Source of the DNA: Octopus sinensis | Lineage: Eukaryota | DNA: 64,000 nucleotides | NCBI RefSeq assembly: GCF_006345805.1 | Contig: NC_042997.1 | Location: 182,404,001 to 182,468,000, forward strand | Direction of reading: 5' to 3' | Shown: positions 4,976 through 52,903 of the stretch, in pieces | Layout: each line of letters starts with the position of its first letter | Position numbering within the stretch: position 1 is the first letter of the stretch | Position numbers and translations under genes: made by a program | The notes under the pieces: model-generated | Told to the model about the DNA's origin: nothing | The model's database searches: none | Seen by the model: the letters and a program-made list of their open reading frames with translations, nothing else

Positions 4976-7900
4976 CTGAAATTCATAAGTGTAGATTTAT
5001 AAGAATCAAAAATACTGAAAATCAACTATTATTAAAATCCAACTAATTTAAATAAAATCATTAGAATATCAAATGGTTACTGACCCAGAATAACTTCCCA
5101 GTTCTTGACAGCCTGTGTCACTTCATAGGCACTTCGCATTTCGGAATAAGCAATACCACCCACCACAAATATTATCAGGCGAGGACCGCTCTTGTAGCTT
5201 GCTTGACCTTTGTCTTTATGCCAGTGTCCGTAACGGACACTACAAAACAAAACAAGAAAAAAATTCATCAGAAAAGGTTTCAAAAATGATTCGACTATAC
5301 AAATTTTAACAAAAAAAAAAAAATCAAAAAACATTTAATTGAATAGTGTATTTATAATTTTACTTTAAATATAGCAGTAATGTCTATATAAAATGTCTTT
5401 TGAATTAAAGCTATATGCATAAATGCTCTCAAAATAATTTGTAGAAGAAAAATGTACAATTCAGTATTTACCTTATTGGTTGTTGACAACTTGGTCTCGG
5501 TCCTCCACCACTAAAGAATGGGAAATGTCGAGTATCTAACTTATCTTCAACTGCTGCCTAAAATGATAAAAAAAAACCTTGAAGATTATAAACCACTCTA
5601 TACATTAAAATATGCTTAAATGAAAGCAAAGTATGAATCCGTTTTGCAGAATCAATTTTAATGACTTGGAATAATATATATGATTTTTTTGACCAAATAT
5701 GTTTCATTTGAAAAGAAAGCTACAATTCCAGTCAGATTCCTATTCCATTTTTATTACACTATTAATATTGAATATATTGCATAGACACTGTTGTCTCATT
5801 GACAGTTATGTCCTTCTTTGAACTCACTGTATATGTATGTCACTTTATAACGTGGACAAGGTTATAACAATACAAATATAAATCAGAAACAACAATGTAA
5901 CAAACAATATCTCTTAATGACTTCTACGGCTTTCTTCACAAGTGCCTGCACACACCACACCGTCACTGACAGTGGGCATGTGCCTTTATACAGTTTAGGA
6001 CAACTGACTTGCTATCCCACAGAGGTATCAGGATTTCACCACAACATCTCTCCTTTCATTAGAAGTTAATGTTTTTCTTTTATTTATTATCTTTATTACC
6101 ACCCCCACCCTTTTTTTTTTTTCAATTCCTCAAGAAGAAATTGGAATATTTTTTCGTTTTGGGTCTACATATAAAAGTTCTGTTTGCTTTCTTCTCCTAG
6201 TCACTGAACTTGTTGATTTGATTATTCCTTGAAGTATCAGGACGTCGAAAATGTCACAAAGAAATTCCATTGGCTCTTCATGCCTTATTCTTTCTTCCAT
6301 AAACCATTTTTTCAGTTGGTTTAGGTGTCCCTGTATTCCCACGTATGACCTTTTACCATGTACATTATTTTCCCTAAACATTTACTTATACCTTCTTCCC
6401 AACTTTCCTTTCTGTTACTGTATATTTAAAAAGAAAAACCGTGTCACCGACTTTGAAGTATTTCATCTTATTTTTGGTGTTTCTTTACATTTTCCCTTTT
6501 CTTCCTGGTAGTAATTTGTCAAACACTGACCTGACTTTCCTGGCAAACATTAGTTCAGCCAGTGATATACCTGATGTGGTGTTGTAGTATGGTGTTATTC
6601 AGTAGACACTTAAGGATTGCGTCAATGCAGTATCAGCTAGTAGTTCATTTCTAGATTTTTTCAGCACCCTCTTAAACGTGTCTACAAAACGTTCCACTTG
6701 TCCATTCCATCTCGGATGGTATAGCAGAGTAGTAATATGCTCCATTGTATGCATTTTGCAAAAGTTTTCAAATTCCTTTGACATGAACTGTGTTCCATTA
6801 TCAGACACTATAGTATCTGGGATACCATATCGCGCTAAAAGTTCATCCAGAAATTCCATCATTACTTTGGAAGTTGGCTTCCCACATTTACATATTTCCA
6901 GCCATTTCATGTAACTATTAGATAATAACCCTCCATTTAACAGTCCTGCGATGTCTATGTGTAAGCTTGACCAAGTTACATCAGTGTTGGGTCAAGGTTG
7001 AATTTTTACAGGTGGTGCCTTTGCTGCCAGCGCACAACCCCTGCAGGCTTTCAGTAAACATAGCTTCTCATCAATGCTTTCATTCTCGCGATTTGTAGGT
7101 GTCCCATGTGGAATATTTTTAACATATGGTTTTGCAAAGAAACAGGTATTACAACCCTCTGAGTGAACATAAGTACATCATCACATATCGAATATCATTC
7201 TAAAATTGTGTTATGCTCAGTTACATGAGTTTTTGTATTTGTTTCAAACTTCACTATTTTTTTTCATTTTTATTATGAATGCATCCTTCTCTGCTTTAAT
7301 TTTTATTTCTTCTAAAGTGACAGGTAGTTCGCATACTACGTTGCAGAGTATACTTTTTATTTTTATTTTGGCTTTTAATGCCACTATTATCATGTCCTTT
7401 AATGATTCATTGTATTTAGGAATCAAACTTGACAGCCAATCTGCATGTTCTAATTTTATCGATGGTAGAAATTCCATGTTAAAATCTTAATTTAGCAGGA
7501 TCATCCCCCATTGCTGCAATCGGTTGTGGGGATACCCTTTTTTGAGCCATAAATTGATAACAATGGGTGGTGATCTGTTTGCAGACTGAATTTCCTTCCA
7601 TGTATGAATTTGTGAAATTTTTTCACCACAAAAAGATAATGGCTAGTGCCTCCTCAATTTGGCTGTTTATTTTTTTCAGCTGCCAACAATGAACATGAAG
7701 ATTGAGCAATGGGTTTTATGTGTAAATTTACCAGTCTTATACCACTTTCACTAGCATTTGATGCTACTACTATTTTAAAATTTAGATCAAAGTGTGACGG
7801 CAGTTCTAATGTTAAAACTTTTTGAATTTCTGCGAATGCTTTTTGAGACTTGTCTGACCAATACCATTTTATGCCATTTTTCAATAGGTTGTTTGGGGGT

Positions 7901-10900
7901 GCTCTTAGCTCATGCATGTTTGGTATGTATGTTTGGTAATAGTGCGTGAGCCCTAAGAACGCTTGTAATATTTTTCGAGGTAGGCATATTTTTTATTACT
8001 GTTGATCTTGAAGGATCTGGCCTCTGACCATTTTTATCAATAACTTGCCCAAGATACCTTATTTCTGGCATGAAAAATTTGCATTTTTCCTTGCTAAGAT
8101 TGAATCTTTACTCCTTTATTTTCTCAAAAGCCATTTTTACATGTTCCTCATTTTGGCCCATGGACTCACTTTTTATGAGTATTTTTTCTGCGTTGTGTTG
8201 TAGATTTATAATTCTTTTGCATTCTTCAGCCACTACTTGTAGGGTTAGTTTTGAATCATGTTCAAGCTTTGTCAATATTTGAGCCCTTATCTCTGCATCT
8301 TTGCTTGCTGTATGAAGATTAAACATTTAACATGGCCAGGCTTAATTTGTCGAGTTTAAATTTTTCACATTCTCTATTTACGATTCTGGGGTACATGACA
8401 AAATTTTCTGTTTCTTTTTTTTTTCAAATTCAAACACTCCCAGCGAATACTAAATAGTGAACTTCTTTCACTGAATATTTTAGATAATAGCTTAATCATT
8501 TCCTTGAAACAAATTTCGGATGGTTTTCTCAGCAAGATGTAATTACAAAACTTTTTGTGTTCTGCTGGTGATAATTTCCTTAAAAGAAGACATACCTTCT
8601 TTTTGTCCATCCAGCTTTTACACTCTTCCTTGAAGATTCCTTCATACCTTCTGAAGTATGCAGAAAACGTTATCCCTTCTTCCAGATTATATGTGAATTC
8701 TTCATTTAAATTAGCAACCACTTCTGCCAAATATGAACCTGAAGTATTTTTTGACTGCAACAATAATTCCAACAACTGTTGATTTTGTTGTTGTTGTTGT
8801 ACCTGTTCTTGCTGTTTCTGTTGTTCTTGTTGCTGTAGTTGCCGTTGCAACTGTTGCTGCTGCTTGTTGTTGTTGTCATTGCAACTGAACCATGAAAGCT
8901 AATAGGTCTGCCATGCTAAGAACATCCACCGTGAGCTTTGAATGTCTTGTCACCACTGTTGTGTCTCAACACTGTTATGTCCTTCTTTGAATTCACTGTA
9001 TATGCCACTTTATTACGTGGACTTATTACAAGGTTATGATAATACAAATATAAATCAAAAACAATACATAACAATATTTTTGAATGACTTCTACGACTGT
9101 CTTCACAAGCACCTGCACACATCACACTGTCACCCACAGTTTAGGACAGCTGACTTGTTATCCCACAAGGGTGTCAAGATTTCACCACTTTGAACCTCAT
9201 AGAGGCAATGACTAGTGACCGTGACCTTTGGCAATGTGCTCTGCTTAAGAGGACTCACCAAGCACTAGTGCCTGTGGCATATGAAAAAAATCAACCTTTG
9301 AAATTACAGAGGCAAAGTGGCTTGATTGTTGGGCCTCACAGAAGCGAGGTGCCTGAGTTCCTTTCAAGCGTTGGGCCTCATGGAGGCAAAGTGGCCAAGC
9401 TACTGGGCCTCATGGAGGCAAAGTGGCCGAGCTCTTGGGCCTCATGGAGGCAAAGTGGCCGAGCTCCTGGGCCTCATGGAGGCAAAGTGGTCGAGCTCCT
9501 GGGCCTCATGGAGGCAAAGTGGTCGAGCTCCTGGGCCTCATGGAGGCAAAGTTGCCAAGCTCCTGGGCCTCATGGAGAATTTATTAAAGAGGTGTTGTGT
9601 CTATGGAAGAAAGTTTAAATGATAAAAAAAAAAAAAATCAAAATTCAAAATTGACTGACATTTGTTCTTAGAGAAAGAACTGCTTCTACCACATCTTTCA
9701 TAGAAATTCTTTAATCTGATATAATTATTTTCAATGCAGAAAACAGTCAAATTTGCATCTGTGAAACAGGAAATTTTAATGTATCATATTAATAATTTAC
9801 ATTTAGCTAGAGTCAGAGTCAGTACATTTTCATCAACTTCAAGTTTAGCTTCCAACTCTGATTACACAATCCAATTTGCTCAGCAATGAAAAATTATGTT
9901 ATTTGTAGGATTCTATCCACACAATCTCCCAGTCTGTTAAAACATACTCTAATCACCTTTCAACTGAGCTACTGGGGTTTTACTAAGTACTCTACATTGT
10001 AAGGTACTGTCAAAGGACAGAACTTCAGATACCTGTTTCTTACTAATGACATTATTAAAACCAAAAATACAAAGCATACCTCCATGATATCCTTTATATA
10101 TGGTGTCCATCTCGACATTTGATAGGTATGATCAGCTGTTCTCTCTTTTCGGTTGTTAGTGTGGTAAGGCTGAGCAATCTTTCTTCGCCCTCCCTAAAAA
10201 TAAAATATAAGATCCAGTTGATTAGCTTTTCTTGACTTGAAAGAAATAAGCAGTTTATGCTGCAGAAACCTGAAGACAGAGAAGGTCTATTGGGAATAGT
10301 GATAAGCCTAATAATCATTTTCATTAATAAGTTATATTAGTTTGTATAAATTTTCATTTATTATTTTCTAAATTCTCACTTGTAATACAAGGAACTGGTA
10401 TCGTGTTTTAGTTGTAAGTGCTAAAATCTTAAATTTTAAGGATATTCTGCTGACAATAAAGATAGGTTGGCAATAACTACAATAAAAATCAAATGATAAT
10501 TTGATCATTTACTTGTATGCCATATACCTCTACTAAACAAAGAGCTACTGATTCTTTTGAACATGTTATATTTAAATGTTGCAATGTTTTTTACTACACA
10601 ACTTCAATCTCTCAGACAGAATCATTGAGATTTTGGTCATAAAATAATGCATTTTAAATCATATCTGACAATACAGATTAGTATTTTATACTGATATCTT
10701 AAAATTTTAAATATAATCAATGACAACACCTTTGTTAACTAAATTTAGATAATATCTAAACCTATCAAATAGACTATTATATATAACATAGGAAGGGGAT
10801 AAAATTTATTAACACTAAGAGATTATATAACCAATCACACCAGAAAACATAAATTTTAATAAAATATTTTTCATAAGTCTTACAACTGGAGTTGCTACTA

Positions 10901-13900: not shown

Positions 13901-16900
13901 CTAACTGTAAAATATCTGCCATCTCTATCAAATCATAACCAACATGGAATCAGTAGCTTTCCTGCATCATGTTTAAGCGTTTAATATTTGATACTGATTT
14001 CATGTTTATTGTATTCATAAGTGCCATTAATGACATATCTATTATAGTTGGTTGCTATTCAGTACTTAAAAAAAAAGTTGAAGATGACAAAGATAACTGC
14101 AGTCATGTGATACCATAAGGTCTGCCTATCAGTTTCAAATTGTACACACCACAAATACAAAGATTTCAATCTAGAAAAAATTAAATGTCAAAGAAAACAA
14201 AAATCAACAAAACAAGACAAATTAAAAGGAGAATAAAAAAGCGTCTAAATGCAATTTTCATGACTCCAATTTAATATCCAATACAATTTAAAAAAGCTAA
14301 CATCAAATTAACAAAAAAAAAAAAATTATTCTAGAATGGTGTTGACAGTCGTACCTGGATAAAAAAAAATACATTCTCTATATGCATACATAGGATGTAT
14401 ACATTTACCTCTTTCTCACATGTACATAGAGACACATTTAAAAGCAAATCACAGAGGTTTATTGAAAGGGAATGACATTATCTGGGGTGACAACTGTGAT
14501 AGCATCAACAACAGGAAATTAAGTTATCCAAGTTACTATAAATATTGCAAATAAAGAAAAATTGTATATTGATCTATACAGAGAATAAATATGGGTCAAA
14601 CTAAAGAAACAAAGAAAATATGAAAGAAAGAAAGAAAACATGAAATAAACAAAAAGGAAGAGATAATAAACTGAAGTTTGATGCAGTGTTAGAGCAGTAA
14701 CCGTATTATATGTCAAGTAGTTTCCTATTTCCAACATTGCATTCAATCTATCATGTATGAGATTAATTCTTTGAGAAATAATATTGACACTTTATCATTA
14801 AATTTACTTCTTGTGGTAAATATTTATGATGAATATCAGTCATCAAAAAAATATTTTAAAATTTCAAAAGGAATTTATTTTTGTAGTTACTCGATTCTAC
14901 TTAAGCATATATGTAAGATGTATGTTTGAGTGTCAAAGTTAATGCTTTAAGATGGAAGTGGAGGGGATCAGATAGTTCAACCAGTAATGAAATTTAAAAC
15001 AATAGTAAATTTTATTTGAAAGTAATAACTTTAAAATAAAAGTTAATCAGACTACATCAGCTCTGCTGATGCCAAACCAGGAAATAGGCCAACAAAAAAA
15101 TTATTCATATAACTAATATTAGGTTTTGGTAGATATATTAAAAAAATTGGGAAAATTGGAAAAAAATAGCCAAAGTTAAAGATCAGTTATTTTAAAATAT
15201 ACAAGACCTATATACTTTTAAATATAGCCTCTTAACTCTTTCATATTTAAGTAACTTAATAAATTAATATATAAAATTACCATTAAGTAAGAAAATTGAC
15301 CTGTATGTGTATGTGTGAGTGTGTGCACATCCGAGACAGAACAAAAGAAAGAATACATTTAAATATGTGAAGAAGAAAGATTTGTGATTTGTTTTATCAG
15401 TAATAACAGTTGCAACCAGATTTCACTCTAACTGTATCCTCAAATCTTGAAAAGGAAATACAATTTAAAAGAAAAAAAAAAAGACAAAAAGAGGGGTGAG
15501 TTGTCACGGTTGAAACGTATCTTGTCATGGGCTTGACTGACATGGCTAAACATGAGGCTAAAAAAAGAAAACAACTCTGAAATTATGAATAATTAAAGGC
15601 AAAAGTTGACTCCTGGTAAGATTTGAACTCCACAATGTAACTACATACTGGAAATTTATTGAGACTGGCACCCATGTATTGTTTCTACCACCCAATAATA
15701 ATCATTTTCAATATAGACACAACATCACAAATTTGGAGGAGGGCACATTTGGTCAAACTGACACAAGTACTTGACTGGTACGTATTTTATTGACCAAGAA
15801 AGATGAAAGATAAAGTTGATCTCAAAAGATTTGAACAAAGAAACCAAGCTAAATATCACAAGTCATTTAATCCATCACTCTACTGGTATCATATTTCAAA
15901 TAAAACATAGTTAAGGACTAAATATATTCTATTACAAATGACATACTTGCTGAAAGTAATATTTATAATTGAGTTTTCATTGAAATAAACTGGAATATGA
16001 CCCTGTCCCCAAACCATAAAACAGTTTCATTAATAAAAAAGCTTAGCAAATATATATTTTGAACTGGTAAATCTGCAGTTTATTGTCTTGTTAATAACGG
16101 TAATCCATCCCAGGTAAAGAATAAGCCTCTAACTGGTCTATCAATTCATTGAAATAATAACTTAATCTCATCCAAATCAAATTATAAAGAGCACACTGGA
16201 TAATGTATTCCTAGAAACACTTTGTTTAAAAATTAAAATACAAGCATGGTCATAATTGAGATGTCTAATTATAGATTTGTCCGCTCTACAATGCCTGGGG
16301 GCATATGCAATCTATTTAAAGGCTATCCTAGGAATACAAATAAAAATGATTTCAAAAGAAAATATAAGAATTCTAGCTGAAGAAGAACTGCAACTATAAT
16401 ACTTTTAAAATCTCATAAAATTAATTATTTTGTTCTTTTAAGTTTTCATAAAATAGCTCGATAGATGAAAGAGTAAGATTCTTGTGTATTGATGTGTTCA
16501 ATCCAGATTTAGTTGCATGCTTACAATCATAAATGTTATTGGAAAATATAAAAATGTTCAAAGTTGCCTTATTTGTCATCCAGCTATATCAGCAGAGAAA
16601 CATCTAAAGGATGTGAAAATACAAAGTTATGATGTTCAAGGGGATGTAGATTTTTATGTTTCCATATTTTATATAATTTTTCAATAGCACATTTTTATAG
16701 CAGCTTATAGAAACAAATGAAAAAAAATTAAAGCAAGATACTTGAGGAAATTTCAAAACAATCTTAATAAGTGTTTGCTTGCACAGCAACAGAAGCAAAT
16801 CCCACAGTCATTCCAGATTTGAAATGGAATTTATAAACAGATTATCTTTGGGATAAACTGATAAAGGAATTTTTTCCAACAGCAATCAGAAGTTTACCTG

Positions 16901-19425
16901 AAAATCAAAATATTTTTACTATTTTGTTAAAAAATAGCAAATCATAATGTCAAATGGTAAGTATAATATTTTTTTGTGTATATGTATGTGTTTTGTTTTG
17001 AAAGTGTTTTGGGGGTTGCATCAGTCAATTTCATCCCAAACATGCAAAACTTAATTCTTTGATCAGACAAATGGGCTGAAGGAAAGACTCACTTGAAGCA
17101 AAAATTTACAAATCAGTATGGATTCAAAACCAATATTTGATTTAAGAAATCAATAATAGTAATGCAATATTCAATATTTTTTTCATAAAGATCTGATGAA
17201 ATCTCTCTGATTGTTGACAAGATAAACTGGAATAAAAAGAACCAGAATATGTTGTATTAATTAAAGGGGAAAAAATTGAATTCAACTCAAGGAAATATTT
17301 AAATATTCAATGAAACAAAATTTGTTTTACTACTTCTTAAAAGTAGAAACTCTGAAGTAGAGTAAACTTTTAAAAGTACAACTTTTAAAAGTAAATATTT
17401 GGTTAAAGAGTGAATATTCAATTCAGTGTTGAATTAATACAGCTTCCACTTCTGGTTGTTGACAAGATGAAGCATGATATCCTAAGGCTTAAATATCAAA
17501 TTATGATAGGGAATAATAAAACAAAATTGAAAACATCACTTTCATGTATATAGTTGAAGGAGTAGTTTTCTGGACATTTAATTGGAAATGTTAAATTGGT
17601 AAACAAATATTCATGAAATAGTTCATTTTCATTAGAAGTAACTAAAAGAACAGCAGTCAACACACATAATCAGCTTACAATAAATGGAAACAGTTTAAAT
17701 AGATAATCAGCCCCAGAAAAGGAAAATATATACCCTAAATTTACATATACTTCACAAGCATCCACATACTATACATGATTCTTACTCAGGTTAGAAACGA
17801 ACTTGAAAAGACAGCCCAATTAAGAAAAAAAAAAGAAAGATATTATGAACATTTGAACATTTCAGTAATAGCATAACCTTTCACCATGGTAAAAGTTAGA
17901 AGGAAAATGCACATAACGCACTTTAAAAATACAATTTCTTAGAGCACTACTGCTATATTGACTGAAAGTATGTTTATAAAATGCCAAATCATAAAATTAA
18001 AATAATTCTCAATAGAAATAAAGTTAATATTATTTTTCTATATAAAAAAAAATATTGTATAGTTTATATTTTTATCCTCAATATTCTAGCATAGTATAAA
18101 AAAATAGGCAGAAAGCAAAATGAGATGGTGTCATATGAATACATAGTTGTTTCAAAAGATTAGGAAAAGGGAACATTTTGTACAGGTCTTCCGCTATACA
18201 TACTTAAGACTTAAAATGCAATGCACAGAAATAAAAATACACAAATATAATTGGTATCATAAAATCCTGAAGTTTAAATAAAAGCTGTAGCATGAAGATG
18301 TGGCCCAATAGAAGAATTAAGTAGCACAAAAATGACATTGGCACAAAAAAAGAAGCACAAATATCACACACTTTTTAATTGATGACATTTATAGATAAGT
18401 TTCCATCTTGGCTGCTGATGCTATCCCAGCATGCCCCAGCATTTTGTTCAGTTTGAGGACAAGGAAGAGCGGTAAGAAAATCCAGCCACTAAGAAAGTGA
18501 TAAAACGACAGCAATGCCAGGAATAGAAAACTTGAGCCTCACCTGCTGGCATGGTGTATTGGATTGGAAAGTTCCATAGCTAGAGACTTCTTGTAAAATG
18601 TTGGTATAATTTTTTACCAGACCCTGTTGTATTGCATGCAAAGAACAGAGACACTAGATGAAGCACTGTCAGAAATATGGACAATCAGAATGCAATACTT
18701 AATATATATGGATCCGACAGAGACACACATATACACAGATGGAGTGACAGCAAGCTGAATATTTGGTGGTGCCAACAATAAACAAAAGATAGCAAATAAA
18801 TAATGATTCAATAGTTAGCAAGAAGCAAAGTTTGAGCTAGAATATTGATTTCATAACTAAGAGGTACAGTATATATTTAGTAGATCACTAAACAAAGTTC
18901 ATACAAAGGCACAGTGTCACAAGACTGATATCTTAAACCAATAAACAAATATAAAATGTTTAAACCTGTACTAAAAATGAGAATGTTAACACATTTTAAA
19001 ATTAATTCTATAGCAATTTATAGTATCTGAATTTTGTAAGTGATAATTAGGAAAATAGTTTGCCTGTGTGTATGTGTATATAATTTAGGCTTGTCCACTG
19101 GCCTGTTATTCTGGCATTTCCAAGGCATGCAGCTGCTTCTTCAGACAGGTCCAAATTGGTAGAAAGACACACATCATCAATACAGTGGCAGAAGTAGGAC
19201 AGAAATTGTGCAAAGATAATAAAAACAACACTAATAAAATGCAAATGGGCGCCCAAGAAGAAAAGAGAGGCAGGAGAAGGGAATGATTCAAGATGTGTAC
19301 ATAAACATGCATACATGCACACACGTTCACAGGCTAACATATTCACATACACATAAACACCAGTTAATCTCTCTTTATCTGTTCAGAGATCATTGGTACA
19401 GCAGAATAATTATAAGACCTGGAAA

Positions 19426-19470
<45 letters not shown>

Positions 19471-21361
19471 GGCAATAAGTTGGCAGAATTGTCAGCACAT
19501 CAGACAAAATGCTTAGTGGCATTTCTTCCAGCTTTATGTTCTGAGTTCAAATGCTGCCAATGTTGACTTTGCCTTTTATCCTCTCAGGATTAATAAAATA
19601 AGTACCAGTCAAGCATTGGGATTGATACAATTGGCTACCCTCCCTCACCCATAATTTCAAGCCTATATTACAAAGAATTATTATCATCATTACTATTAAA
19701 GTGGTCATTAGCACATCAGACAAAATGCTTAGCATAACTTGTAACTTTTTACATGCTGAGTTCAATGTTGTTTCTTATTCTTTCAGGGTAGATAAAATAA
19801 GCTACCAGTCTAGTACTAGGCTGATGTAATCAACTACTTACAGTCCCTAAAAATTGCTGGCCTTGTGCAAAAAATTGAAACAATTATCATTATTATTCAG
19901 TCAGGATCATTAAAGCATCAAACAGAATGCTTCACTGTATTTGTTCCAACTTTCTTTGTTCTCAGTTTAAATTTTGCCAAGGACAACTTAGACATTCATC
20001 CTTTCATGGCCAATAAAAAAAGGTAGCAATCCAAGATGGTGGATTGGCAGAACTCTAAGAATATCAGACCAGGATGATGATGATGCTTTCGTTCTGGTTC
20101 TTTATGTTCTGAATTCAAATGCTGACATAAACTACTTGGATGGTAAATTTAACTTATCACCCAATTTAACACCTCCATCACTACTACTTGACACCTTGGG
20201 TACTTTTAGTGGAGTTGACTGTCACAAGCATTTGGGCCAGTTTTCAATTTGAGGATGCCTTCCTCCCTTCTTTCCACTGGTGTTGAAGGTTCTATAATGA
20301 GTCATGAACACTGCCTTCTCTCCTGACTAAAAGATAAAAAAAAAGTTTCTTTTGAGTCAGTAAAATAAAGTACTAGTCATGTACTGGGAGTTAATATAAT
20401 TAACCAATTCTGCCCCTCAAAATTGTCAGCCTTGTACCTAAATTAGAAATTATTATTCTCATTATTACTGCCTGACTGGCCCTCGTGCTGGTAGCATGTA
20501 AAAGCACCCACTGCACTCTTGGAGTGGTTGGCGTTAGGAAGGGCATCCAGCTGTAGAAACTCTGCCAGATCAGATTGGAGTCTGGTGCAGCCATCTGGTT
20601 CACTAGATCTCAGTCAAATTGTCCAACCCATGCTTGCATGGAAAGTGGACATTAAATGATGGTGATGATGATGATGATGTAACTACCAATATTTCATTTG
20701 GCAATGACTACCACAGCTGTTTATTATCAGTGTCACTTCCAACTGATTTATGATTTTATTTGTTTTTACCATTAGATGATTGAAGACCTTTGCTTGGCTA
20801 TCTCTGACTCACAACCCCTTTCATTCTGTTGTTTCAACAATCTATGAACAGATAAGAGGCAGACAAGTGTCTGTATATGAGATTGTGTATGTAGATTTGT
20901 TGAATAATTCCCTTTTCCCCTCTCTCTCCTTCCTGTAGTTATATTATTATATTCACACAACTTGTATACATTTTTTTCTGCACACTATTTCTACCATAGC
21001 AGTGATGAGGCAATGTCTCTTCACCAGCTCAGACTTAAAAAAGCAGCTGCATGCCATGGAGAAATTTTAGAGTAACAGCCACTAGACTGCCCTAAATAAA
21101 CTACTGCACTCTGTGTATTTATTGAGTACAAACATATGCACACACACACATACACACACAGAGTTCCTTCATGAAGATCATTCAAAATATTAATTCAAAC
21201 AAGAATGTAGATGATCTTCATAAAAATATATATTTAAGTAATTTACATCTCAACTATATTAAAAACTGTTTTGAAGAAGTAAAATGTAAATTTTAATATT
21301 TTTTGAGACCTCAATGTAGAAAGCTAAAAAGAATTATGTACGTATGTATATATATATATAG

Positions 21362-30300: not shown

Positions 30301-33300
30301 TAAAAGTTTTAACTAATTTACGAAAATATACAAACAAAAATGCATTTTGATAGTTTCAATAAATTCACAGCTCAGTTTTGGGAATGCAAGTTTATAAACT
30401 GCTAAAAGAAAGGAAAAATTAATAAATTTTGCCAAGAGAGTTTTAAATACATCTTCCATTAAGTTTTTTACATTTCAGTATATAAGAAAAAAGTTATAAT
30501 TTTTGTTGTATGAGACAATATATTAACTAAAGCTCCACAAAGCAGCAGTTCAAATTAAAAAGTAATCAAATAGTCATCAACTGATAGAAATAAAATTTGT
30601 TTAAAAAAAATCTTTAAAAAAAATTTGTTTGAAATAAAAGTGATAGCAAGAACTGTTAACTGAAAATATGTTGAATGTACACGATCCAGGTGGTTTTTAT
30701 TAAATTCAAAGATTTTCATGATGGTGACAGGAGTGGTGTGAATGCACGGCAATTGTAATAAAATGCATGCAGTTTATATAATAATGATGCTTTTCTACAA
30801 ATAGGCATAATTGGTGGGTGTTAATTGTGACATAAGAAAAATGCAATCTCATAGAGAGAATTCAGGAATTTAAGAGATTAAAGAAAAAAATCATTAAAAA
30901 AAAAAGATTTCCAAAATAAAATTTAAAATATATTTGAAACTGAAAAAGTAGTCAGGATAGGCAATGAAAGGTAAATTATACACAAAATAGAGTGCACTAT
31001 ATAATGGTTAAATAAACCTACTCACATCTTGAATAATTGGAACCCCAAGGTGTTGCATATCATTTATAATCCATTTTTCTTCAGCTGGGATATGTGCATG
31101 TTGAACAAGTTTGGCTAAATTCTCTTCAGAAATACCTGAAATATTTAGGTTTTGTTGTTAGAGATGGATGTTTTTCTTATAGAAATATATTAATTGAAGT
31201 AAAATAAATATGAAAGAAAGAAAATGATAGCAAAATTATTTATTTCCAATTATTAGCATTTTCTGAAAATTATCATCATGCCTTAAATCTTTTGTTAAAA
31301 TGCATTCCACTTAAGAGCCAAAATGGATTTTCCCTCATAAAATGAATTTTTAATGAATTTTAAATAAAAGAAAGAATAAGTACCGCCTTTATGAATTATA
31401 TATAGAAGAATTATTCTAATCTTATCATAAGCTGTTATTTTTTGGTCTAACAAAATTGGTACGATGTTCCTCATGTGGTCCTTGATTTTCTCTCCATCAG
31501 CATCTGTTCCCATTGCAAGATCCTATAGTAAATATATATAAGAAAAATTTCACTAAAGTCACTCACTATGATAATAAATTTAATATTTCACTTAAAACTT
31601 TAAATTAAAAAATCATGGGGTGTCAGAGTTCAATAAATAATTTCAACAAGATGTATACCATCATACAATCAAAAGGAAATCCTATTTTCTATATTTTAAT
31701 TATTTAATCTACTGATGGATAGAGCTGATTTTAAAAGCTAAATGGTCATAATTGCTATAGTACAAAAATAATTTCTTTTTCTTTTTAGCACTTTATTGGT
31801 TATATCGAAAAATTATTAAATTCAAATTGATTGCAATATTATATTAATTCTACTTGTCATTGTGTTACTTGGCCCATCGGTAACGCTTTCATGTGATTAG
31901 AGAAAAAGAGGGAGAAAGAAGGAGTGAGGGAGAAGTGTCCATGATGTGACGTAGAAGGAATGTAATTGTAATGCTTTCACATGATTAGTTGAAGGGAAAG
32001 AGAGTTTTTTTTAACTAAGCTTTTTATATCACCTATTACTTAACGCATGCACATAAGTGCAATTCCATGAAATATTGGTGCTCCTTTAAGTGGCAGATAT
32101 ATGCAATTTAACTAAAGGTTGTATCATATGTATGGGATATTTTTTTTGTTTATAGGGAAAAATGGAAAAATAAGAGTGAATATTTATTTTATGAGTGCTG
32201 TGTATCAAGTCTATAAAATTGTGCATTAAATATATAAAGTGTATATAGATAAAGTGCATTAAGTAATCACCATATTCCAATTTCTTTCATCTTTCAATGA
32301 GTAGCAGATGACTGACTACCTTTCCAAACATACACAACACAGGTTACATTTTCAGGATTTCTGGATAAAGATTTCAGAAATAACCCAATAGATTTACCAT
32401 TAATTCCGTGGAATATTCACAGGTCCTGCTAGTAAATTTAAAAAGAATAAGTGGACATAAAATTGAAAGAAATTAAAAAGACAAACCTGTTCAACTTTAC
32501 ACAATTTGTCCACATGTTGTTGGTATTGCTTCATGCAATCTTCAGCTAAGTGGAGATGTGTGGAATATTTGGAAAGTTCTTTCTGATATTGTGGCATCTT
32601 TTTTAACATCTGTGATAAATCTTTAATTCCGGCTTTATCAGCTGTACCCATTCTCTTTGCATCGGCAAACTGCTTTAGTTTCTTTGTCACATTTCTATTA
32701 AGATTAAGCAGATTACATCAATTCAGAAAGGAAAAAGAAAATCTTATATTCAATCAATCACTCTAAATACACACATAAGTTAAAACCACAAAACATAAAT
32801 AAATCAAATTTCAATATTTTCTTTCTTTTTTTTAATCAACATTAACCATTTTTAAATTGAATCTGTTCTGAAATTCATTTGACAAACTAACTCATACATT
32901 TAATTGCTAAATTTCTTACCACAATTTACTAAAAAAAACTTTCCTTGAAAATTATAGCAATAAAATAAAGTTTCTCAATGCTGATGAAAAGTTGTGATAG
33001 GATGATATCTTCAAATCAGTTGTGACTTTTAAGTTCAAAGTACAAGACCTGTTTGGGTAAATTTTATGTCTAGCATCCATTTTATATGGCCTAATGACTG
33101 GAGTTGATATTTTTCAATGATGGTTTGGATTCCCATAGATTTTGTTCTTGTTAGTATCTCTTCCTATTTGGTAATCAGGATTAATTGCAGTTTTGCTGGA
33201 TGAAATCTCTACAGACAACATAACTGATGCTGATACAAGTTCAAGTTCAATAGCAGTACAGATACATGTTCAGCCTTACAGCAGTACAGAGAAAACAACA

Positions 33301-36300: not shown

Positions 36301-39300
36301 ACTTAGCCACCTTCCTTGCACTTAAACCAGTAGAATCAAACACGAGAAGTTTCCACACAAATGATAACCATATTTATAACCCGAGATTTGCAGAGTTCCT
36401 TATTCCAATTTAAGTTAATTCTCAACATTTGGCTGGGCAAGTTAGTCATTTTAATAATATTCTGCCTCAAAATCAAACCAAATCAAATCAGATATCAGAA
36501 AGCAGAACCAAAATTGAGGTCGATCAACATCAGTGGAAATTGCAGCTGTGGTTAAGCGAACCATCAGATTGTGGTCGTTGCCGGCGCGCCCCGCCTGGCC
36601 CCCGTAAAAGCACCATCCGTTCGTGGCCGTTGCCAGCTTCGCCTGGCCCTGTGCCGGTGGCACGTAAAAGCACCATCCGCTCGTGTCCGTTGCCAGCCTC
36701 GCCTGGCCCCCGTGCCAGTGGCACGTAAAAGCACCATCCGTTCGTGTCCATTGCCAGCCTCGCCTGGCCCCCGTGCCGGTGGCACGTAAAAGCACCATCT
36801 GTTCGTGGCCGTTTGCCAGCTCCGTCTGGCACCTGTGCGGGTGGCACGTAAAAAGCACCCACTACACTCATGGAGTGGTTGGCGTTAGGAAGGGCATCCA
36901 GCCGTAGAAACACTGCCAGATCTGACTGGGCCTGATGCAGCCTTCCGGCTTCACAGACCCCAGTTGAACCGTCCAACCCATGCTAGCATGGAAAACGGAC
37001 GCTAAATGATGATGATGATGATGATGATCACCAACCAGCATGAGACTGCATTTGGTTCAATGTTTCAAAACCTCTTGTCTGATGTAAATTAAAATCCTTC
37101 ATCATAATTTTATGTAAGAATCTTTTATGTTCCTAACACCAGCTTAAATAATCCCTCTAAATTCTAGATTATTTTCAAGGTTAACTGAAACATATAAGCA
37201 GAGTATTTTATTTGAAAAGTAGTCATAAATAGATTATGTGAAATTATGAAATAAAATAGTTTAAAATACAGTCAACAATGAGTAGCTAATGTCACCTTTT
37301 CCTCACTGCATAATTATTTCTAATGGGACTTTTGACACACACACTGCATAAAATATATTAATATCAAATATTGTTTTTCTGTATGGATGTGAGGGATAGC
37401 ATCTTTTAAATATCTGCTAATCTTTCAAACCTACTTATTACAATATTGGATTTCAACTGAGTGATTGTCCCATCACTAACTTTTGCAGAGTTAATAAGAC
37501 TGAAACAGGTCCAGAGTTGTCTCCCATACTTGCTGAAATGATTAAAATATTAACTATTATTTTTTTTCTTGATACCTTATTGTTTATACTATATGCTTAC
37601 AGCATTAAATATGTTAATGCTAATGAACTAGACATAATAAAAACACTTAGAACTTACTTGTAAACATCATTTTCAATAGGAAGAAGGTCATACGCCATAG
37701 CTTGGAAAGTTAATTCATGAAGAAGAGGTGAAATAGGATCAAAACCTCTATCTAATATCAACAGCTGAGACCGATCCTTTTGCGGACCCTATATTGGGGG
37801 AAAAAAAAAACAAATAATAAACTTCAAATGTAATTTTCATAAACACATAACATACAAACGACACAAAAAAAAATGTTTAAACATGAACACCTTTAGTGAA
37901 TATAAATTCAATGATCTAAGAAACAAATACTATCAAATGAAAACATTCCAACTACCAGAAAAACACACAACATATCATTTCAAACAATTGTAGCAGTAAA
38001 CTATTTTGTCTAGATTTCATCTTTAACAATTATACAAACAAAAGTTATACAGTGCAAAGTATCTTTTACTTTATTTGCTTCAGTGAACAGAGCAGAAACG
38101 TATGTTTCACACCTACTTTAATGCATATATTTAGGTGAAGCAACTCCGGCCTTGTGCATGGAACAAATTTATACATACGAAAAATTTTGGTTGTTCATCA
38201 GTGTCCATGAGATCCTAATTTACTTGTGCATATACTGACTGTACTACTTTGTAGTATCTAGAATGATGCTGTACTGTCTAAATAAAGAAAACAAACAGAC
38301 AACCCTAAAGAGCTCTCTCTCTCTTTTACTCTTTTACTTGTTTCAGTCATTTGACTGCGGCCATGCTGGAGCACCGCCTTCAGTCGAGCAAATCGACCCC
38401 GGGACTTATTCTTTGTAAGCCCAGTACTTATTCTATCGGTCTCTTTTGCCGAACCGCTAAGTGACAGGGACGTAAACACACCAGCATCGGTTGTCAAGCA
38501 ATGCTAGGGGGACAAACACAGACGCACAAACACACATATATACGACAGGCTTCTTTTAGTTTCCGTCTACCAAATCCACTCACAAGGCATTGGTCGGCCC
38601 GGGGCTATAGCAGAAGACACTTGCCCAAGATGCCACGCAGTGGGACTGAACCCAGAACCATGTGACACACATCTAAATACAGTAGTGTAATGGTTTGTTA
38701 AAATATTTCAGATCAACAAATATAGCACACATTTTTATCCAATAGCACACATTTTTCTTGCAGACTTCTCTGAATAAATATCTTTCAATGATTTTAAACT
38801 GTATTTTGTTTATTTTAACTCTTGATGACTCATCCAACGCACACAAGCATAGCAAGGGAATGTAAAATGCTGCTGATGACAATAATAATACTAGTATGAC
38901 TAAGACTTTCTACCATCTTTATTACTTGGTTCATTGGGATTAAGTCTGCAAACATTTCCCTTTCATAGAGTGGCACCCTTGGGACAATTGTAGTTACATT
39001 AGTCATCACAAGTAACTTATTCCTGTAACAACTGATTATGACCAGCATTTCTCCAAACTATTTTGATACTTTCAACATCACTAATTTCTTTGTGAAAACT
39101 GTTTTTTACCCTAATTTCAAAATCTGTATGTTACTTGTCACAGTCCAACTAATAATTTCTTGTGAGGAAGTTCTTGTCCCTTTCATAATCTATGATCAGC
39201 AGTCAAGTTATAATGACACTTGAAATTTTACTTAGAGATGTAAACATATATTTTCAGACAAGCTATAAAAATGAAAAGCATAAAGTGTTTGGTCAGTTTT

Positions 39301-42300
39301 CCAAAACAACTAGGACATTAGCAAGGAGAGCATGTCTTTGTTTAACAATTGTATGTTTCTTTTCATCACTTACACATAATATAAGAACTTAGTCTTGAAA
39401 AACTATCTGTACATGGAATCAATTTTAATATCTCTTTATCTGAAGAAAAACTTATCCTTTTGAAATCAGACAATTTTCTGAGTAGACAAAAGCCTTCAGA
39501 AACAACAGAATGAGTTCCTTCTGTGTCATTCAACACATGATTTTCTAAGTGTTAAAAATACATAAATTCAACAGGATTATATTTGAACCAAATATATGAA
39601 TTTTAAAGTTTAATACTTCTCCCATTGTTGGATCATCAGCTCTGTAGGCATCTAGTTTTTGTTGAACCATTTGAGCAAACTCAGCATTTTTGTCATAGTC
39701 CCTAAGAAAGAAGATTAAAATGCAATTTGAATTTTAAAATTAAAACAGAATTTAAAAAAATATATTTTTGATGCACATATAATATTAGTTCCGCTTCCCA
39801 TAGGGACAATCAAATTGTTATAAATGAATTAAACTTACGATCGATATCGAACAGAAGGATATTCACCAAGTGTGGCACAGAGAGTTGCAATTTGTTCTGC
39901 ACATCTCTCTAAATTAGGAATGCTTCCTTGCATTCTTGAGGCATTATAGTATACTTGGAATGTATCAGGAGAGTCCAGAGAGAATATCTGAAAAACATTT
40001 CATGTCAGTTTTAAAATAAATATCTTATTTCAAACAAATTTATAAATATGAAATATGTTAAATAAGTGAATGTCTAATAACAATGGATAATTCAAAATCA
40101 AAAATAATATACATATATTTAATACTTTACCATTCTGTTACGAATTAGATTTTGCAAATATAGTTTTTTATATAGAGTATTCCTAATAACTAAACAGAGA
40201 AATTAGTCTAATCAAAAATCTAAATTTAAAACTACAATAAAAGTGAAATATATTTTTTAAAATATATATCAACCCCCCACCACCACCATTATAGGTGTCT
40301 ACTCTTTGAACCCCCCTCTTCAATACGCTATTTCACCATGCATTACCCCTCTTTCGATATCCTACGTTCTACTTGCCTAGAACCTGTCCTCTGAACCACC
40401 CCTCCCACTGGTGCTCCCCTATATTTCTGCACCCCCCCACCACCATTATAGGTGTCTACTCTTCAATACGCTATTTCACCATGCATTACCCCTCTCTCGA
40501 TATCCTACGTTCTACTTGCCTAGAACCTGTCCTCAGAACCACCCCTCCCACTGGTGCTCCCCTATATTTCTGCACCCCCCCACCACCATTATAGGTGTCT
40601 ACTCTTTGAACCCCCCTCTTCAATACGCTATTTCACCATGCATTACCCCTCTCTCGATTTCCTACGTTCTACTTGCCTAGAACCTGTCCTCTGAACCACC
40701 CCTCCCACTGGTGCTCCCCTATATTTCTGCACCCCCCCCATAAAAAGCACCATCCGAACGTGGCCGATGCCAGACCCCTCTGGCACCTGTGCAGGTGGCA
40801 CGTAAAAAACACCCACTACACTCGCGGAGTGGTTGGCGTTAGGAAGGGCATCCAGCTGTAGAAACACTGCCAGACTAGACTGGAGCCTGGGGCAGTCCCG
40901 AGCTCCCCAGACCGCGGTCGAAACCGTCCAACCCGTGCTAGCGCGGAAAACGGACGTTAAACGATGATGATGATGATGATGACTACATGTGTATGTATGT
41001 ATATGTGTGTATATATATATATACATATATATGTGTGTGTGTGTGTATGGCTGTCATCTATCCAGTGAGAGATGTATAGTAATCCCCCGACTATTGCAGA
41101 TGTTACGTTCCAAAACCCCCCACGATAGGTGAAAATCTACAAAGTAGAAACAGTACTGTATATTTTTTAAAATTATTTTTATAATTTGTATATATCTATA
41201 TATATAAAACTAGTTGTGTGAGTGTCTGTCTCCTACGATTTAGATTCCTAACTCCTCCCACATTTTGCGGTGTCGATGGCGGCGGAGTTGGCATCCACGC
41301 TCACACCTGCACCTGTGGGGAAGGGAGTGTAAGGAAATCAACGTCGTAATGCATTGTCAAGGAGACCAGCGTTCTTTTAGAACAACGACTTCATGGCTTG
41401 AAGACACCAAAACAGAAATGGCTAAGAAAGCGTCTACATGAGTCTACGATTTAAAAAAAAATTTACCATCGTTTTTTTTCCATTTTAATGCATTTTTTCG
41501 CTATTATATAAGGGAAGTAACTCTCTAAAAATGTCTACGATGAGTCAACGATTTAAAAAAAAAAATTACCATCATATTTTTTCATTTTTAATGCATTTTT
41601 TGCTATTTTTTGGCTATAACTCTCTAAAAATGCTTATATAGTTATTTCCCTTACAAACCTGAGCAACGCCGGGCGATACTGCTAGTTATATATAAATGTG
41701 AAGTTGTGTGTCTGTCTCCTACAATTTAGATTCCTAACTACTCCCACATTTTGCGGTGCAGTTTAACCAAAACCGGGTATCTTATAGTCGTGATTCATAT
41801 CGAGCCCTTCTGGGTATTAGCGCGCATCTATGATGAGTCTACGATTTTAAAAATAATTTACCATCGTTTTTTTCCATTTTAATGCATTTTTTCGCTATTA
41901 TATAAGGGAAGTAACTCTCTAAAAATGTCTACGATGAGTCAACGATTTAAAAAAAATTTACCATAATTTTTTTCCCATTTTTAACGTATTTTTTTGCTAT
42001 TTTTTGGCTATAACTCTCTAAAAATGCTTTATAGTTATTTCCCTTACAAACCCGAGCAACACCGGGCGATACTGCTAGTTTTATTATAAATGCAAAACAA
42101 CACCACAGAGGAATCAACGTAAGCTTAAATAATAAACTGTGATAGGTGAACCATGATATGGTGAGAGATTACTGTATGCAATTTTTAATACACAATCTAA
42201 GAAAGAGTTACTAATAGTTTCATGCTGTAAAGATATAATAATTTGGCAGATTTATATAACACGCCATGTATCTCCAAGCATTTGTTCAGGTTCAGTGTAT

Positions 42301-45300
42301 ACTGTTAAACCTATTTGAAAATCAGGACACTGGTCTATAAGAAAAAAAATGGGAAGGAAAATGCAAAGAAGATTGATGCAAAAAGTAGGATGAGGAGAAA
42401 AGTAAGATCTTTGTCTTCTTTTCCTGTAGAAATCATAATTAATCTAACTGGTGTAGCATAATATAATGGATAGAAGGCCAGAGTCTGTAAGAGGGTGGTA
42501 TCCTCCAGTTTAACAAAAGAAATTGTACATGTGCTTGCTTTTGCTAAAAGTTCTGGATCTGGAATTAAATAACGTGGTGGAATTCTTTCATCTAAAAAGA
42601 ATGTGCAATCTTTCAGCTACGCATAATTTGCATCTCTTCGATCCATTTATAAATGGTGTAGATTTCTCCACAATTTTCAATTTGATTGTATGTAGACCTT
42701 CTCAAACATGGATAGCCAACTTAGCAGCTTCATTTTTATCATAGTGTCCGAAAAAGGACTGAAGGTTAAAACTGCCTTCCCATAAACTGACATAATTTTT
42801 TACTCTTGATTATATTGTCTGAGAGAAATGCTGTAATTTCAGCCTCATAAACAACTGAGTTTATCAAACATGCTTGATCAAGAAGGCAAGCTTCAAGGTC
42901 TCAACAGTTACAACTGGGAGTGGGCTCTTGGTGTGACTAGCAAGTGATAATATTCTTTATATTAGGGCAGCAACAGTATAAAATTTTTAACAAGCATCTA
43001 TTAAAAATCTTCCTGTATTTGTGGTTTACTGGAAAATGCTTATTAAATAATGCCAGGAATTCTTCATGTATGTTAGTTTTAACATTTGAGGAGAAGGAGG
43101 GGACAAACTATATTATTTCCCTAAGAGTATTTTTAGGCTCCATATTTTTAACTGAAAAGTTATATATGATATTTTTGAAACTGCTGTTAGCTAGGGTATT
43201 GTTTTAGTATAGGGCTGCTTTATCAAATATGTGCTTTGAAAAGGATAGATTAGATATCCTATTGCTGATGTTGGCTATCAGGTTTTTAAACACTATGGTG
43301 GGAGTGCAGAAATGTTTATGTGTATATATATGAGTTTCTCATTGTTTGTGATAGGGTTTATAAGAGCAAGAGTTTAAGTCTAGGGAAACATCTAAGAAAT
43401 CAACTTTGGACATAAATAGATGCAGTAATTCTGAGGTGTAACTGACAAAAGTTTTTTCCTTAGTGCATCATTATCACAGTTGTTAGATATGCCCAAACCA
43501 CTGTCACAGTATAGGCCAAGTGTGTATTGGAAACTTTGATCCCAAAGTATTTAATATATAGAGACCTACACAATCACTGATGTTTGCAGTCATACGACCC
43601 TGTTGTTACATCTAATAGCTCACCTGTATCAGACTTTTTTTAACCCATACAGAGCCCTTACTGAGTAAAAGGGTTTTTCAAGCATTCACGATAAAGTTCA
43701 GGATTTGTAGTGAATATTGACATATCTTTTGGCAAACTTAATCACCTTATCCACTAATGATCTTGATATTGAGGGATAAAAATATACAATAGCAACCTGT
43801 AAATCTAGCTGTATTCTTAACCTTTAAATTCCTAAACCAATCTACCAGTGCTGTTATTTACCTACTGTTGTAATTTAGCAATCTCTTTAATTCTAATATT
43901 AATATTCCTTAGTAATTTTTAGCTACCAAACCCATTTCAGTTCTTGGTGGGTTCAAAAGTCTACACGTGTTCATTTTTCAGAAATTAGGTTTGTGATCTT
44001 TTAGAGTATTAAAAGTTTCACATTTTGCTAAGCACCCTAACCTATCATCAATTATATATTGTTCAGAGAAGAATTTTTGACTGATTTGGTAGACTACTTG
44101 AATATCTAAAAATTGTTAACCCAACTTCATGTTTATAATATATAAAGCCAGTATATACAATCAAGATTGACTGAATGAAATAGGAAAAGAAAAAAAAAAA
44201 CAACTGCAATAAATGGTTTTGTGTTTTTATGAATGGATAGGAATTGCCTAAAGTTAATCAATTGACTGATTAATTTCTAGACATGTAGACTATGTAGAAA
44301 GTATTTACTCTTACCTGTGATTCATATGGGAGAAAAGCTATATTTATTTCTTTTAGTGTTTTGATGAATTTTAAGGTGGTAGATTTGCTTATCTCTTTAA
44401 ATAATTCATCAGGACATGCTGCAAAAAAGTTTATAAAAAAAATTATCTTAGGAACGAATTCATTGGTAGCTCTTTAATTTGTTCACTTAGGATAGAATTC
44501 TAAATTAAATATTTTTAGTGAAACTAGCAAGATTAGAAAAGTATGAATTAAGAAATACAAAGCATATGAATGAGTATTTCCATCCTCATGATTGTTTGAG
44601 GACCCTTGACTCTGTTGCATCTTCATGCTCAATCCAGAATGAATAGGGTCAGTGTCCCTAAAGTTCACTTCCAAGTCAATTTACTGTGAGAGTTGACTCC
44701 CTTAACCTTTGCCTGCAATGGTGTCACATAAAAGTGCCTGCAACAGTGCCATGTAAAAAGCAACCAGTACACTCTGTACAGTGGATGGCATTAGAAAGGG
44801 CATCAAGCCATAGAAACCATGCCAAAACAAACAACTGGAGCCTGGGCAGCTCTCCAGCTCCTGTCAAACTGTCCAACCCATTGCCAGCATGGAATAGACA
44901 TTAAATGATGATGATGATGATACTTATCAGCTAGGAAACATAGGCAAACAGAGTTACAGGAGAAAATTTATTCTGCTTTATAATTAAAATTTGCTCCTAC
45001 AATATGTAAATTTCCAGTTTTCACATCTACCAACACTATCCAATCCCATGATAGCATGAAAGAAAAAAGACAGAGAAAAGGTTTGAAGATCAATCATTAT
45101 GTATTATCTTTTCATTTTGAATTTCTTTTACTTAAGAAATTTTCTCCCTTCTTTTACAGAGTGGCTCATTTTTTTAGTGGAAGAGTAGTCTCAACTGATA
45201 TATATATATACTAGAAAAACCTCTTTGATCTGAAAAACTATTTCCTGAAATTTGAAAATTCAGGAAATAAAAAAAGGCAGACAAAATTAAAAAAAAAAAG

Positions 45301-50180: not shown

Positions 50181-50372
50181 CATCATTTAACGTCCGTTTT
50201 CCATGCTGGCAGTGTTTCTACAGCTTGATGCCCTTCCTAATGCCAACCACTGCATGAGTGTAGAGGGTGCTTTTTATGTGCCACCAGCACAGGGGCCAGA
50301 GGAGGCTGGCAATGGCCACGATTGGCTGGTACTTTTTATGTGCCAACGGCACGGAAGCCAGTCATGGCGGTG
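50174..50372 (-). mobile_element. (CAT)n-tailed SINE fragment
   Basis: catcatcatcatttaacgtccgttttccatgc...gatgcccttcctaatgccaaccac. Confidence 0.8.
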
Positions 50373-51799: not shown

Positions 51800-51851
51800 C
51801 ACATACATATATATATATACATACTACTTACTACACAGCCACTCCTGCATA

Positions 51852-51883
<32 letters not shown>

Positions 51884-52314
51884 CATATATATACATACAT
51901 ACATATACATACATACACATATATATACACATACATACACATATATATATACACATACATACATATATATATACATACATACATACACATATATATATAC
52001 ACATACATACATATATATATACATACATACACATATATATATATACATACATACACATATATATATACATACATATACATACATACATACATACACATAT
52101 ATATATACACATACATACACACATATATATATATACACATACATATACCTAGATATACATATATATACATATATACATATGTATACATACATATATACAT
52201 ATGTATACATACATATATACATTTGTATACATACATATACATATGTATATATATATATGTATACATATACATATGTATATATATATACATATATATATAT
52301 ATATACACACACAC

Positions 52315-52351
<37 letters not shown>

Positions 52352-52356
52352 CACAC

Positions 52357-52411
<55 letters not shown>

Positions 52412-52547
52412 TATGTATATATACATATATATACTCTCTTTACTCTTTTACTTGTTTCAGTCATTTAACTGCGGCCATGCTAGAGCAACGCCTTTAGTTG
52501 AGCAAATCGACCCCAGGACTTATATATAAATATATATATATATATAT

Positions 52548-52588
<41 letters not shown>

Positions 52589-52644
52589 TATATATATATA
52601 TACACACATACACACACATATATATATTATATATACACACACAT

Positions 52645-52684
<40 letters not shown>

Positions 52685-52778
52685 ACACACATATATATAT
52701 ATATATATACACATACACACACATATATATATATATATACACACATACACACACATATATATATATATATATACACAT

Positions 52779-52809
<31 letters not shown>

Positions 52810-52814
52810 CACAT

Positions 52815-52900
<86 letters not shown>
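51800..52900. repeat. Compound (TA)n/(CA)n/(TACA)n microsatellite field split by a SINE tail at 52432-52520
   Basis: Directly visible; it explains the overlapping YI/HT/CV-rich ORFs. Confidence 0.97.

Positions 52901-52903
<3 letters not shown>

Follow-up and report, generated by a model that had tools for sequence, protein, structure and literature searches.

Munc18-1 is essential for neurotransmitter release, and to our knowledge the only splice variation of Munc18-1 that has been well studied is C-terminal. Its two vertebrate forms, Munc18-1a and Munc18-1b, are splice isoforms of STXBP1 with region-specific expression in the nervous system (PMC4583478). A second well-described feature of the protein is Y473, which lies on the outer surface at the interface of domains 3a and 3b; a phosphomimetic change at this residue blocks both VAMP2 binding and SNARE templating (PMC5770875). 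The DNA considered here is a stretch of 64,000 nt from Octopus sinensis (contig NC_042997.1, positions 182,404,001 to 182,468,000; hereafter, the window), which carries exons of a Munc18 gene on its minus strand. A preliminary description of this DNA, made from its letters alone, had singled out window 18623-18543 as a hidden 81-nt exon in a very large Munc18 intron. The present analysis indicates, with high probability, that this segment is a genuine and already annotated alternative cassette exon of the octopus STXBP1/Munc18-1 orthologue, and that its origin is mollusc-wide.

By homology, the host gene is the STXBP1/Munc18-1 orthologue of the Sec1 family. Fifteen exons on the minus strand were placed by tblastn against human STXBP1, together with inspection of their splice junctions; the first standard coding exon (MALKSAVHEK) falls outside the window. 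A PDB search with the host protein placed squid s-Sec1 (E = 0) and STXBP1 (E = 1.5e-254) ahead of STXBP2 and STXBP3, and PF00995 (Sec1/Munc18) was assigned to all protein matches. The intron that holds the cassette is 20.8 kb long and runs from exon 12, which ends in ...PIIQD, to exon 13, which begins with GGRRK... Because the end of exon 12 and the start of exon 13 were read at the splice junctions, the intron is known to be phase 0 and the cassette to be in frame.

Read directly on the minus strand, window 18623-18543 gives ...ttctttgcatgcaatacaacag/GGTCTG...CCAGCAG/gtgagg, where the slashes mark the splice boundaries. The 81-nt segment comprises 27 stop-free codons between a CAG acceptor and a CAG/GTGAG donor, as first proposed. 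Its donor outscores every constitutive-exon donor of the Munc18 gene within the window. The acceptor tract is poor in pyrimidines, which is usual for alternative exons. The 20.8-kb intron contains 426 open segments of the form AG...3n...GT that are 30-300 nt long, and by a crude position-weight score the cassette leads them all by a wide margin, chiefly on the strength of its CAG/GTGAGG donor; this ranking was made after the segment had been chosen. Since the ranking is post hoc, the decisive evidence for the exon is comparative. An alternative AG lies farther upstream, at 18653, and would yield a 111-nt exon; no annotated isoform uses it.

The segment is already present in public annotation and is thus known at the database level, so the word "hidden" has to be dropped. 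A query across the insert-containing junction returned syntaxin-binding protein 1 isoform X4 of Octopus sinensis (NCBI) with 100% identity across the region. Among the seven O. sinensis RefSeq isoforms, X1, X2, X3, X4, X5, and X7 carry the exact 27 residues at the PIIQD/GGRRK junction, and X6 lacks them. In O. bimaculoides, annotated since 2015, isoform X1 (XP_014777775.1, XP_052828630.1) has an identical insert and X2 has none, across two annotation releases. Gene models for both the inclusion product and the skipping product therefore exist in these two species. The skipped form is also represented by the Argonauta gene model (P0003) and by a Logan transcript contig (P0020), the sole full-length octopus contig in Logan. 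An O. vulgaris gene model carries the insert; that annotation was built from Iso-Seq and RNA-seq transcript models plus protein alignments (PMC10700109). A search of the literature found no paper on molluscan Munc18 splice variants, on this exon, or on its motif in Munc18. One match to SSYGTF, in a schistosome protease epitope, is irrelevant.

Inclusion in six of the seven O. sinensis isoforms could be taken to mean that the exon is effectively constitutive in octopus and that the skipped form is minor or aberrant. This is highly improbable. Both O. sinensis and O. bimaculoides have an annotated isoform that skips the exon, P0020 and P0003 are both skipped, and both forms are annotated in scallops. 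Moreover, the number of isoform models mostly mirrors the use of alternative 5' exons rather than abundance: the seven O. sinensis models (P0002, P0008, P0010, P0012, P0015, and P0016 among them) differ mostly in alternative 5' exons that give N-terminal extensions.

Conservation of the frame and of the splice sites in relatives had been set beforehand as a check on the exon, and it was borne out. The exon is intact at the corresponding loci of both Argonauta hians (L002) and O. bimaculoides (L003), where neither the splice sites nor the peptide differ from those of O. sinensis. Over the 291 nt centred on the exon, there is no difference between O. sinensis and O. bimaculoides and only three between O. 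sinensis and Argonauta, of which the sole exonic one is a synonymous change from GTC to GTG. The identity between Octopus and Argonauta is 0.99 for the cassette and 0.99 for each of its 100-nt flanks. For the 14 constitutive exons in the window, the corresponding values are 0.89-0.96 for the exons and 0.15-0.71 for the 100-nt intronic flanks. Because the cassette and its flanks are more conserved than the constitutive exons and theirs, the cassette is, on this comparison, embedded in an octopod ultraconserved element, an arrangement typical of tightly regulated alternative exons. The preliminary description had also noted a distinct block at about 18100-19300, and this coincides with the best Octopus-Argonauta block, 19059-17900. 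The 601 nt around the cassette are single-copy in the 2.72-Gb genome, and the GC content of the block is slightly above that of the neighbouring sequence.

At ~600-1200 nt, the block is far larger than the exon, and so it might be thought to be mainly an enhancer or some other non-coding element, or to serve a gene on the opposite strand, and only to overlap an occasionally used exon. However, the conservation peak is symmetric about the exon, an Rfam scan of the window found no family, and Pfam gave no match for a 111-aa open reading frame (ORF) located where the wider block begins on its upstream side. In addition, selection on the peptide across molluscan classes, described below, shows that coding use is the conserved function. 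Thus, a primarily non-coding role for the block is very unlikely. The same intron holds a second stretch of ~100 nt that is ~95% identical between Octopus and Argonauta (window 14430-14522, minus strand); with no open frame flanked by usable splice sites, it is, by its sequence, a conserved non-coding element.

Cassettes related to that of octopus are found in other molluscan classes. Isoforms of Haliotis rufescens and H. cracherodii have the related insert GQGKNYSRLIQDCSSYGTFQGGLQ at the same junction, and those of Mizuhopecten, Pecten, and Argopecten have AAG(T/N)KSFSVGLLEDASYGTFQSIAQ; related inserts of 24 residues in Mytilus species and of 25 residues in Littorina saxatilis also lie at this junction. 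In scallops, inserted and skipped isoforms are both annotated. In the genomic loci that were compared (L004-L007: Mizuhopecten, Haliotis, Littorina, and Mytilus), each insert corresponds to a discrete 72-75 nt AG...GT exon inside the homologous phase-0 intron, and the CAG/GTGAG donor is kept at the cassette in scallop, mussel, periwinkle, and abalone. The presence of these shared cassettes in the same intron indicates that the cassette predates the split between cephalopods, gastropods, and bivalves, that is, it is at least as old as their common ancestor. The suggestion that the insert might be specific to cephalopods or to molluscs is borne out insofar as the cassette is present across molluscs; specificity to cephalopods fails, since bivalves and gastropods have it.

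Comparison of the inserts also identifies the part of the peptide that is conserved. SYGTFQ and the terminal Gln are invariant across lineages, and the remainder of the cassette varies. All six SYGTFQ codons vary among lineages, and all of the pairwise differences (34/34) are synonymous changes at third positions. Because the codon changes within SYGTFQ are exclusively synonymous, there is clear purifying selection on the peptide as judged from these codons. The octopus insert had been described as a Cys-containing regulatory insert; its Cys is not conserved in other molluscs, and the conserved core is SYGTFQ with the terminal Gln.

A few observations weigh against the reading of a genuine, mollusc-wide alternative exon. 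No cassette-bearing transcript contig or fragment was found in the Logan search, so that inclusion may be low or restricted to certain tissues; a search with short fragments returned only the O. vulgaris gene model together with fragments, arthropod ones among them, that continue through the intron. The evidence for inclusion comes from automated gene models whose supporting reads are not visible. All 12 of the 12 decapodiform sequences (squid s-Sec1, two Sepia pharaonis models, and nine transcript contigs) read PIIQDGGRRK with no insert. The lack of a recovered contig, together with the large number of open AG...3n...GT segments in the intron, would fit a chance pseudo-exon that is never spliced in, in which case the annotated isoforms would be artefacts of gene prediction. 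It is extremely unlikely, however, that chance would give the same annotated 27 residues in three Octopus species, an intact exon in Argonauta that sits within an ultraconserved block, and cassettes at this junction in four further molluscan lineages, where SYGTFQ changes only synonymously. The segment is therefore best regarded as a real cassette exon.

The decapodiform comparison is at the level of proteins and transcripts; the Sepia pharaonis gene exceeds 100 kb. A squid-type contig of 83 kb (L008) contains exons 11-12 and, in the 10.2 kb downstream of them, neither the cassette nor exon 13. Decapodiforms may have lost the exon or may rarely splice it in. The insert is absent from every Munc18/Sec1 chain in the PDB, including mammalian Munc18 and squid s-Sec1, as the preliminary description had stated for squid and human; the octopus junction aligns between D453 and S454 of the rat and human proteins. 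Outside molluscs, no homologue of the insert was found, in searches that are weak on questions at the level of isoforms. None of the best 150 HMMER representatives has a SYGTFQ-like insert, a result that says little about taxa outside molluscs since the 50%-identity set collapses isoforms. Several arthropod-like ENA/Logan fragments (P0047-P0050, P0055, P0064) read through an intron of ~100-130 nt exactly at the D/G junction (...VVD-VS...Q-GNRKK) and have no SYGTFQ-like content there. The phase-0 intron position is therefore common to molluscs and arthropods, although the arthropod intron has no cassette.

Other small exons occur near the same junction. In abalone (Haliotis rufescens), two tandem cassettes lie ~80 nt apart (L005:38314-38367 and L005:38450-38521). 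Both start with GQGKNYSRL, which is followed by IQDCSSYGTFQGGLQ in one and by DESSFRILE in the other, and the two occur in separate annotated isoforms. From their sequences, they look like a duplicated, mutually exclusive exon pair. A further small cassette, DGSDGSKGLKATSPLNLVLCGG..., lies in the same abalone intron (L005:35116-35181). In mussel, the intron has additional small cassettes, DGEQEKSSIFKS and EVNPDIIANTLGLS (L007:15594-15629; protein P0243), and a DDKAEE insert is found at the junction of exons 11 and 12. The Munc18 linker thus appears to be a hotspot for alternative exons. The surroundings of the gene are also shared: a gene for a protein of ~1170-1190 aa with a RasGEF domain lies head-to-head directly upstream of Munc18 (L002:1-473, L003:1-447, L004:1-169, L007:1-166). 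By this gene order, RasGEF-Munc18 microsynteny is conserved across molluscan classes (Argonauta, O. bimaculoides, scallop, and mussel).

Besides the donor, one intronic feature of the cassette is shared between classes. An exact UGCAUG lies just upstream of the acceptor, ending 6-11 nt before it and so within the branch-point/polypyrimidine region, in octopods (Octopus, Argonauta), Mizuhopecten, Mytilus, and Littorina, that is, in 4 of 5 independent lineages. In these loci, UGCAUG occurs at a background of 1 per 1.6-5.4 kb per strand, and, UGCAUG aside, the intron around the cassette is not alignable between molluscan classes. Given this rare background and the unalignable surroundings, it is very unlikely that the hexamer would recur by chance within a target of ~20 nt in 4 of 5 lineages, even when the post hoc choice of the motif is taken into account. 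The sequence (U)GCAUG is the binding site of Rbfox proteins, and in vertebrates, flies, and worms, inclusion is repressed when Rbfox binds at the 3' splice site or upstream of it. An RRM protein probe of the O. sinensis genome identified, at G000:C24:26710269-26710394 (L009), the second half of an Rbfox-type RRM, with 74% identity to the RBFOX1 RRM and 30-40% to other RRMs. This exon, whose product is close to identical with vertebrate RBFOX, is flanked by very long low-complexity (AT/TTA) repeats. A Fox-1_C Pfam search of the genome gave no match anywhere, and its controls likewise gave none. Together, the motif, its position, and the RRM exon suggest that Rbfox may control skipping of the cassette.

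An alternative explanation for the conserved flanks is that they preserve a double-stranded pre-mRNA for A-to-I editing of the exon rather than sites for splicing factors. Editing sites in coleoids do constrain their flanking sequence, and the nucleotide conservation seen here, synonymous sites included (one change in 81 nt), exceeds what coding would need. On the other hand, a 361-nt stretch around the exon shows no more folding stability than its shuffled versions (z = -0.18), and the inverted repeats near the exon are only short and imperfect. Furthermore, UGCAUG and the donor are kept in non-cephalopod molluscs, which lack massive recoding. An editing duplex is thus unlikely as the main explanation; it is compatible with splicing control, to which it could add as a further cause.

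The position of the insert in the protein bears on what it might do. As had been stated at the outset, the insert lies just upstream of the Tyr equivalent to Y473, which is the 24th residue after it (the insert ends 23 residues before). An AlphaFold2 model of O. sinensis isoform X4, built from a 104-sequence alignment, has a mean pLDDT of 87.8 and a pTM of 0.89; a model from a 19-sequence alignment had a mean pLDDT of 36 and was not used. The insert (P0002 residues 476-502) falls within the sole long internal low-confidence coil, residues 478-506, which lacks secondary structure and has a pLDDT of ~41, a low value that may partly stem from the few alignment rows carrying the insert and that tempers the structural reading to this extent. 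This coil lies between a helix (456-468) and a well-modelled segment that contains Y526, the equivalent of Y473. The model thus places the insert in a surface linker that is predicted to be disordered, is flexible and basic, and follows the final helix of domain 3b. The short invariant SYGTFQ inside this predicted disordered and otherwise variable region is the pattern that marks a linear motif.

A mechanism can be proposed from these features. Inclusion would add 24-27 residues with SYGTFQ between PIIQD and GGRRK, lengthening the flexible linker. On the most economical reading, the insert would display a short linear motif, rich in Ser, Tyr, and Thr, that would serve for docking or phosphorylation and would tune the function of Munc18 in particular cell types, leaving the folded core unchanged. 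The motif might also act sterically on the nearby groove. Inclusion would be controlled through dense intronic regulatory sequence, the ~600-nt element in octopods and UGCAUG in most lineages. By the rule that upstream binding represses, the cassette would be skipped in Rbfox-rich cells such as neurons and muscle; the predicted neuronal skipping would fit the squid cDNA, which is derived from optic lobe, and the skipped transcript contigs. Taken as a whole, the proposal is tentative: an ancient, Rbfox-gated switch exon may add a SYGTFQ docking or phospho-motif beside Y473, giving a cell-type tuning of SNARE templating that is absent in vertebrates, and in octopods this exon may have become locked in a ~600-nt ultraconserved element, possibly through added splicing or editing control. 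Several points count against it. Haliotis lacks an exact UGCAUG and has only CAUGC at that place, and the link to Rbfox consists of motif conservation and a rule borrowed from other animals.

The features of the locus are collected in the following table.

Table 1. Positions of the cassette exon, its splice sites, candidate control motifs, neighbouring exons, and conserved blocks in the window
Feature	Position	Strand	Remarks
Alternative cassette exon, 81 nt, 27 residues	18543..18623	-	Sequence, translation, and exact match to RefSeq isoform inserts
Acceptor AG (3' splice site)	18624..18625	-	9/16 pyrimidines upstream; crude score 0.1; same in O. bimaculoides and Argonauta
Donor intron bases gtgagg (5' splice site)	18537..18542	-	CAG/GTGAGG with last codon; 14.3 bits
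UGCAUG hexamer (Rbfox-type motif) in acceptor/branch region	18635..18640	-	Last base 11 nt upstream of exon
GCAUG core (GGCAUG), downstream	18430..18434	-	109 nt past exon; octopods only; no leading U; weak evidence
Upstream constitutive exon 12 (GISEENLAK...LGVPIIQD)	31026..31135	-	Phase-0 donor GAT/gtgagt
Downstream constitutive exon 13 (ttttag/GGRRK...)	10080..10193	-	Holds the Y473-equivalent Tyr
Ultraconserved core, ~600 nt, exon mid-block	18261..18860	-	At least 90% Octopus-Argonauta; 100% over 18710-18611 and 18560-18461
Wider conserved block	17900..19059	-	Longest, best Octopus-Argonauta alignment of this intron; 84% identity across 1169 nt

Elsewhere in the window, remnants of an LTR retrotransposon occupy 6599-8898 (minus strand), in the intron between exons 13 and 14. 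They include an integrase core (rve, E = 5e-9), a weak match to an RT RNase H-like domain, and a gag-like ORF (DUF7083) that contains a poly-Q tract. An interspersed element with ORFs has copies on both strands, at about 20400-20700, 36870-37060, 40640-41050, 44720-44900, and 50190-50470, and fragments of it also align at several places of the Argonauta locus. A long (TATG/TACA)n-type microsatellite at 51641-53200, with GC down to 0.21 and a strong GC skew, gives rise to long spurious ORFs in all frames.

Since the exon is already in RefSeq for many molluscs, the discovery value of the window is limited. What is new here is that the cassette is homologous across classes, that its SYGTFQ core is invariant, and that UGCAUG and the donor are conserved with it; further additions are the ultraconserved element of octopods and the place assigned to the insert in the protein structure. 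An internal cassette of such deep conservation, next to the Y473 site, points to a second and lineage-specific means of modulating SNARE templating, and the locus offers a clean case in which to study the persistence of alternative exons and of their control elements from one molluscan class to another.

Among known systems, squid s-Sec1 (PDB 1EPU, 1FVF, and 1FVH) is the cephalopod orthologue; it is 92-93% identical to the octopus protein and has the same PIIQD-GGRRK junction. It is the skipped form, in which the octopus insert would fall between D451 and G452, and so these structures are uninformative on the included isoform. Like Rbfox-regulated cassette exons, the molluscan exon has UGCAUG directly upstream of its 3' splice site, a feature kept between classes, and the octopus genome contains an Rbfox RRM gene; the exon is a candidate for that group by sequence, and abalone has no exact motif. 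Like the ultraconserved intronic elements that accompany regulated exons in vertebrates, the octopod exon and several hundred nt of its flanks outdo the neighbouring constitutive exons in conservation. However, this ultraconservation is seen only within octopods (Octopus-Argonauta), and between molluscan classes only the peptide motif, the donor, and UGCAUG persist. Finally, the vertebrate pair Munc18-1a and Munc18-1b shows that the same gene family likewise makes isoforms by alternative splicing. The vertebrate forms differ only at the extreme C-terminus, whereas the molluscan cassette is internal, in the linker between domain 3b and domain 2, beside the Tyr equivalent to Y473.

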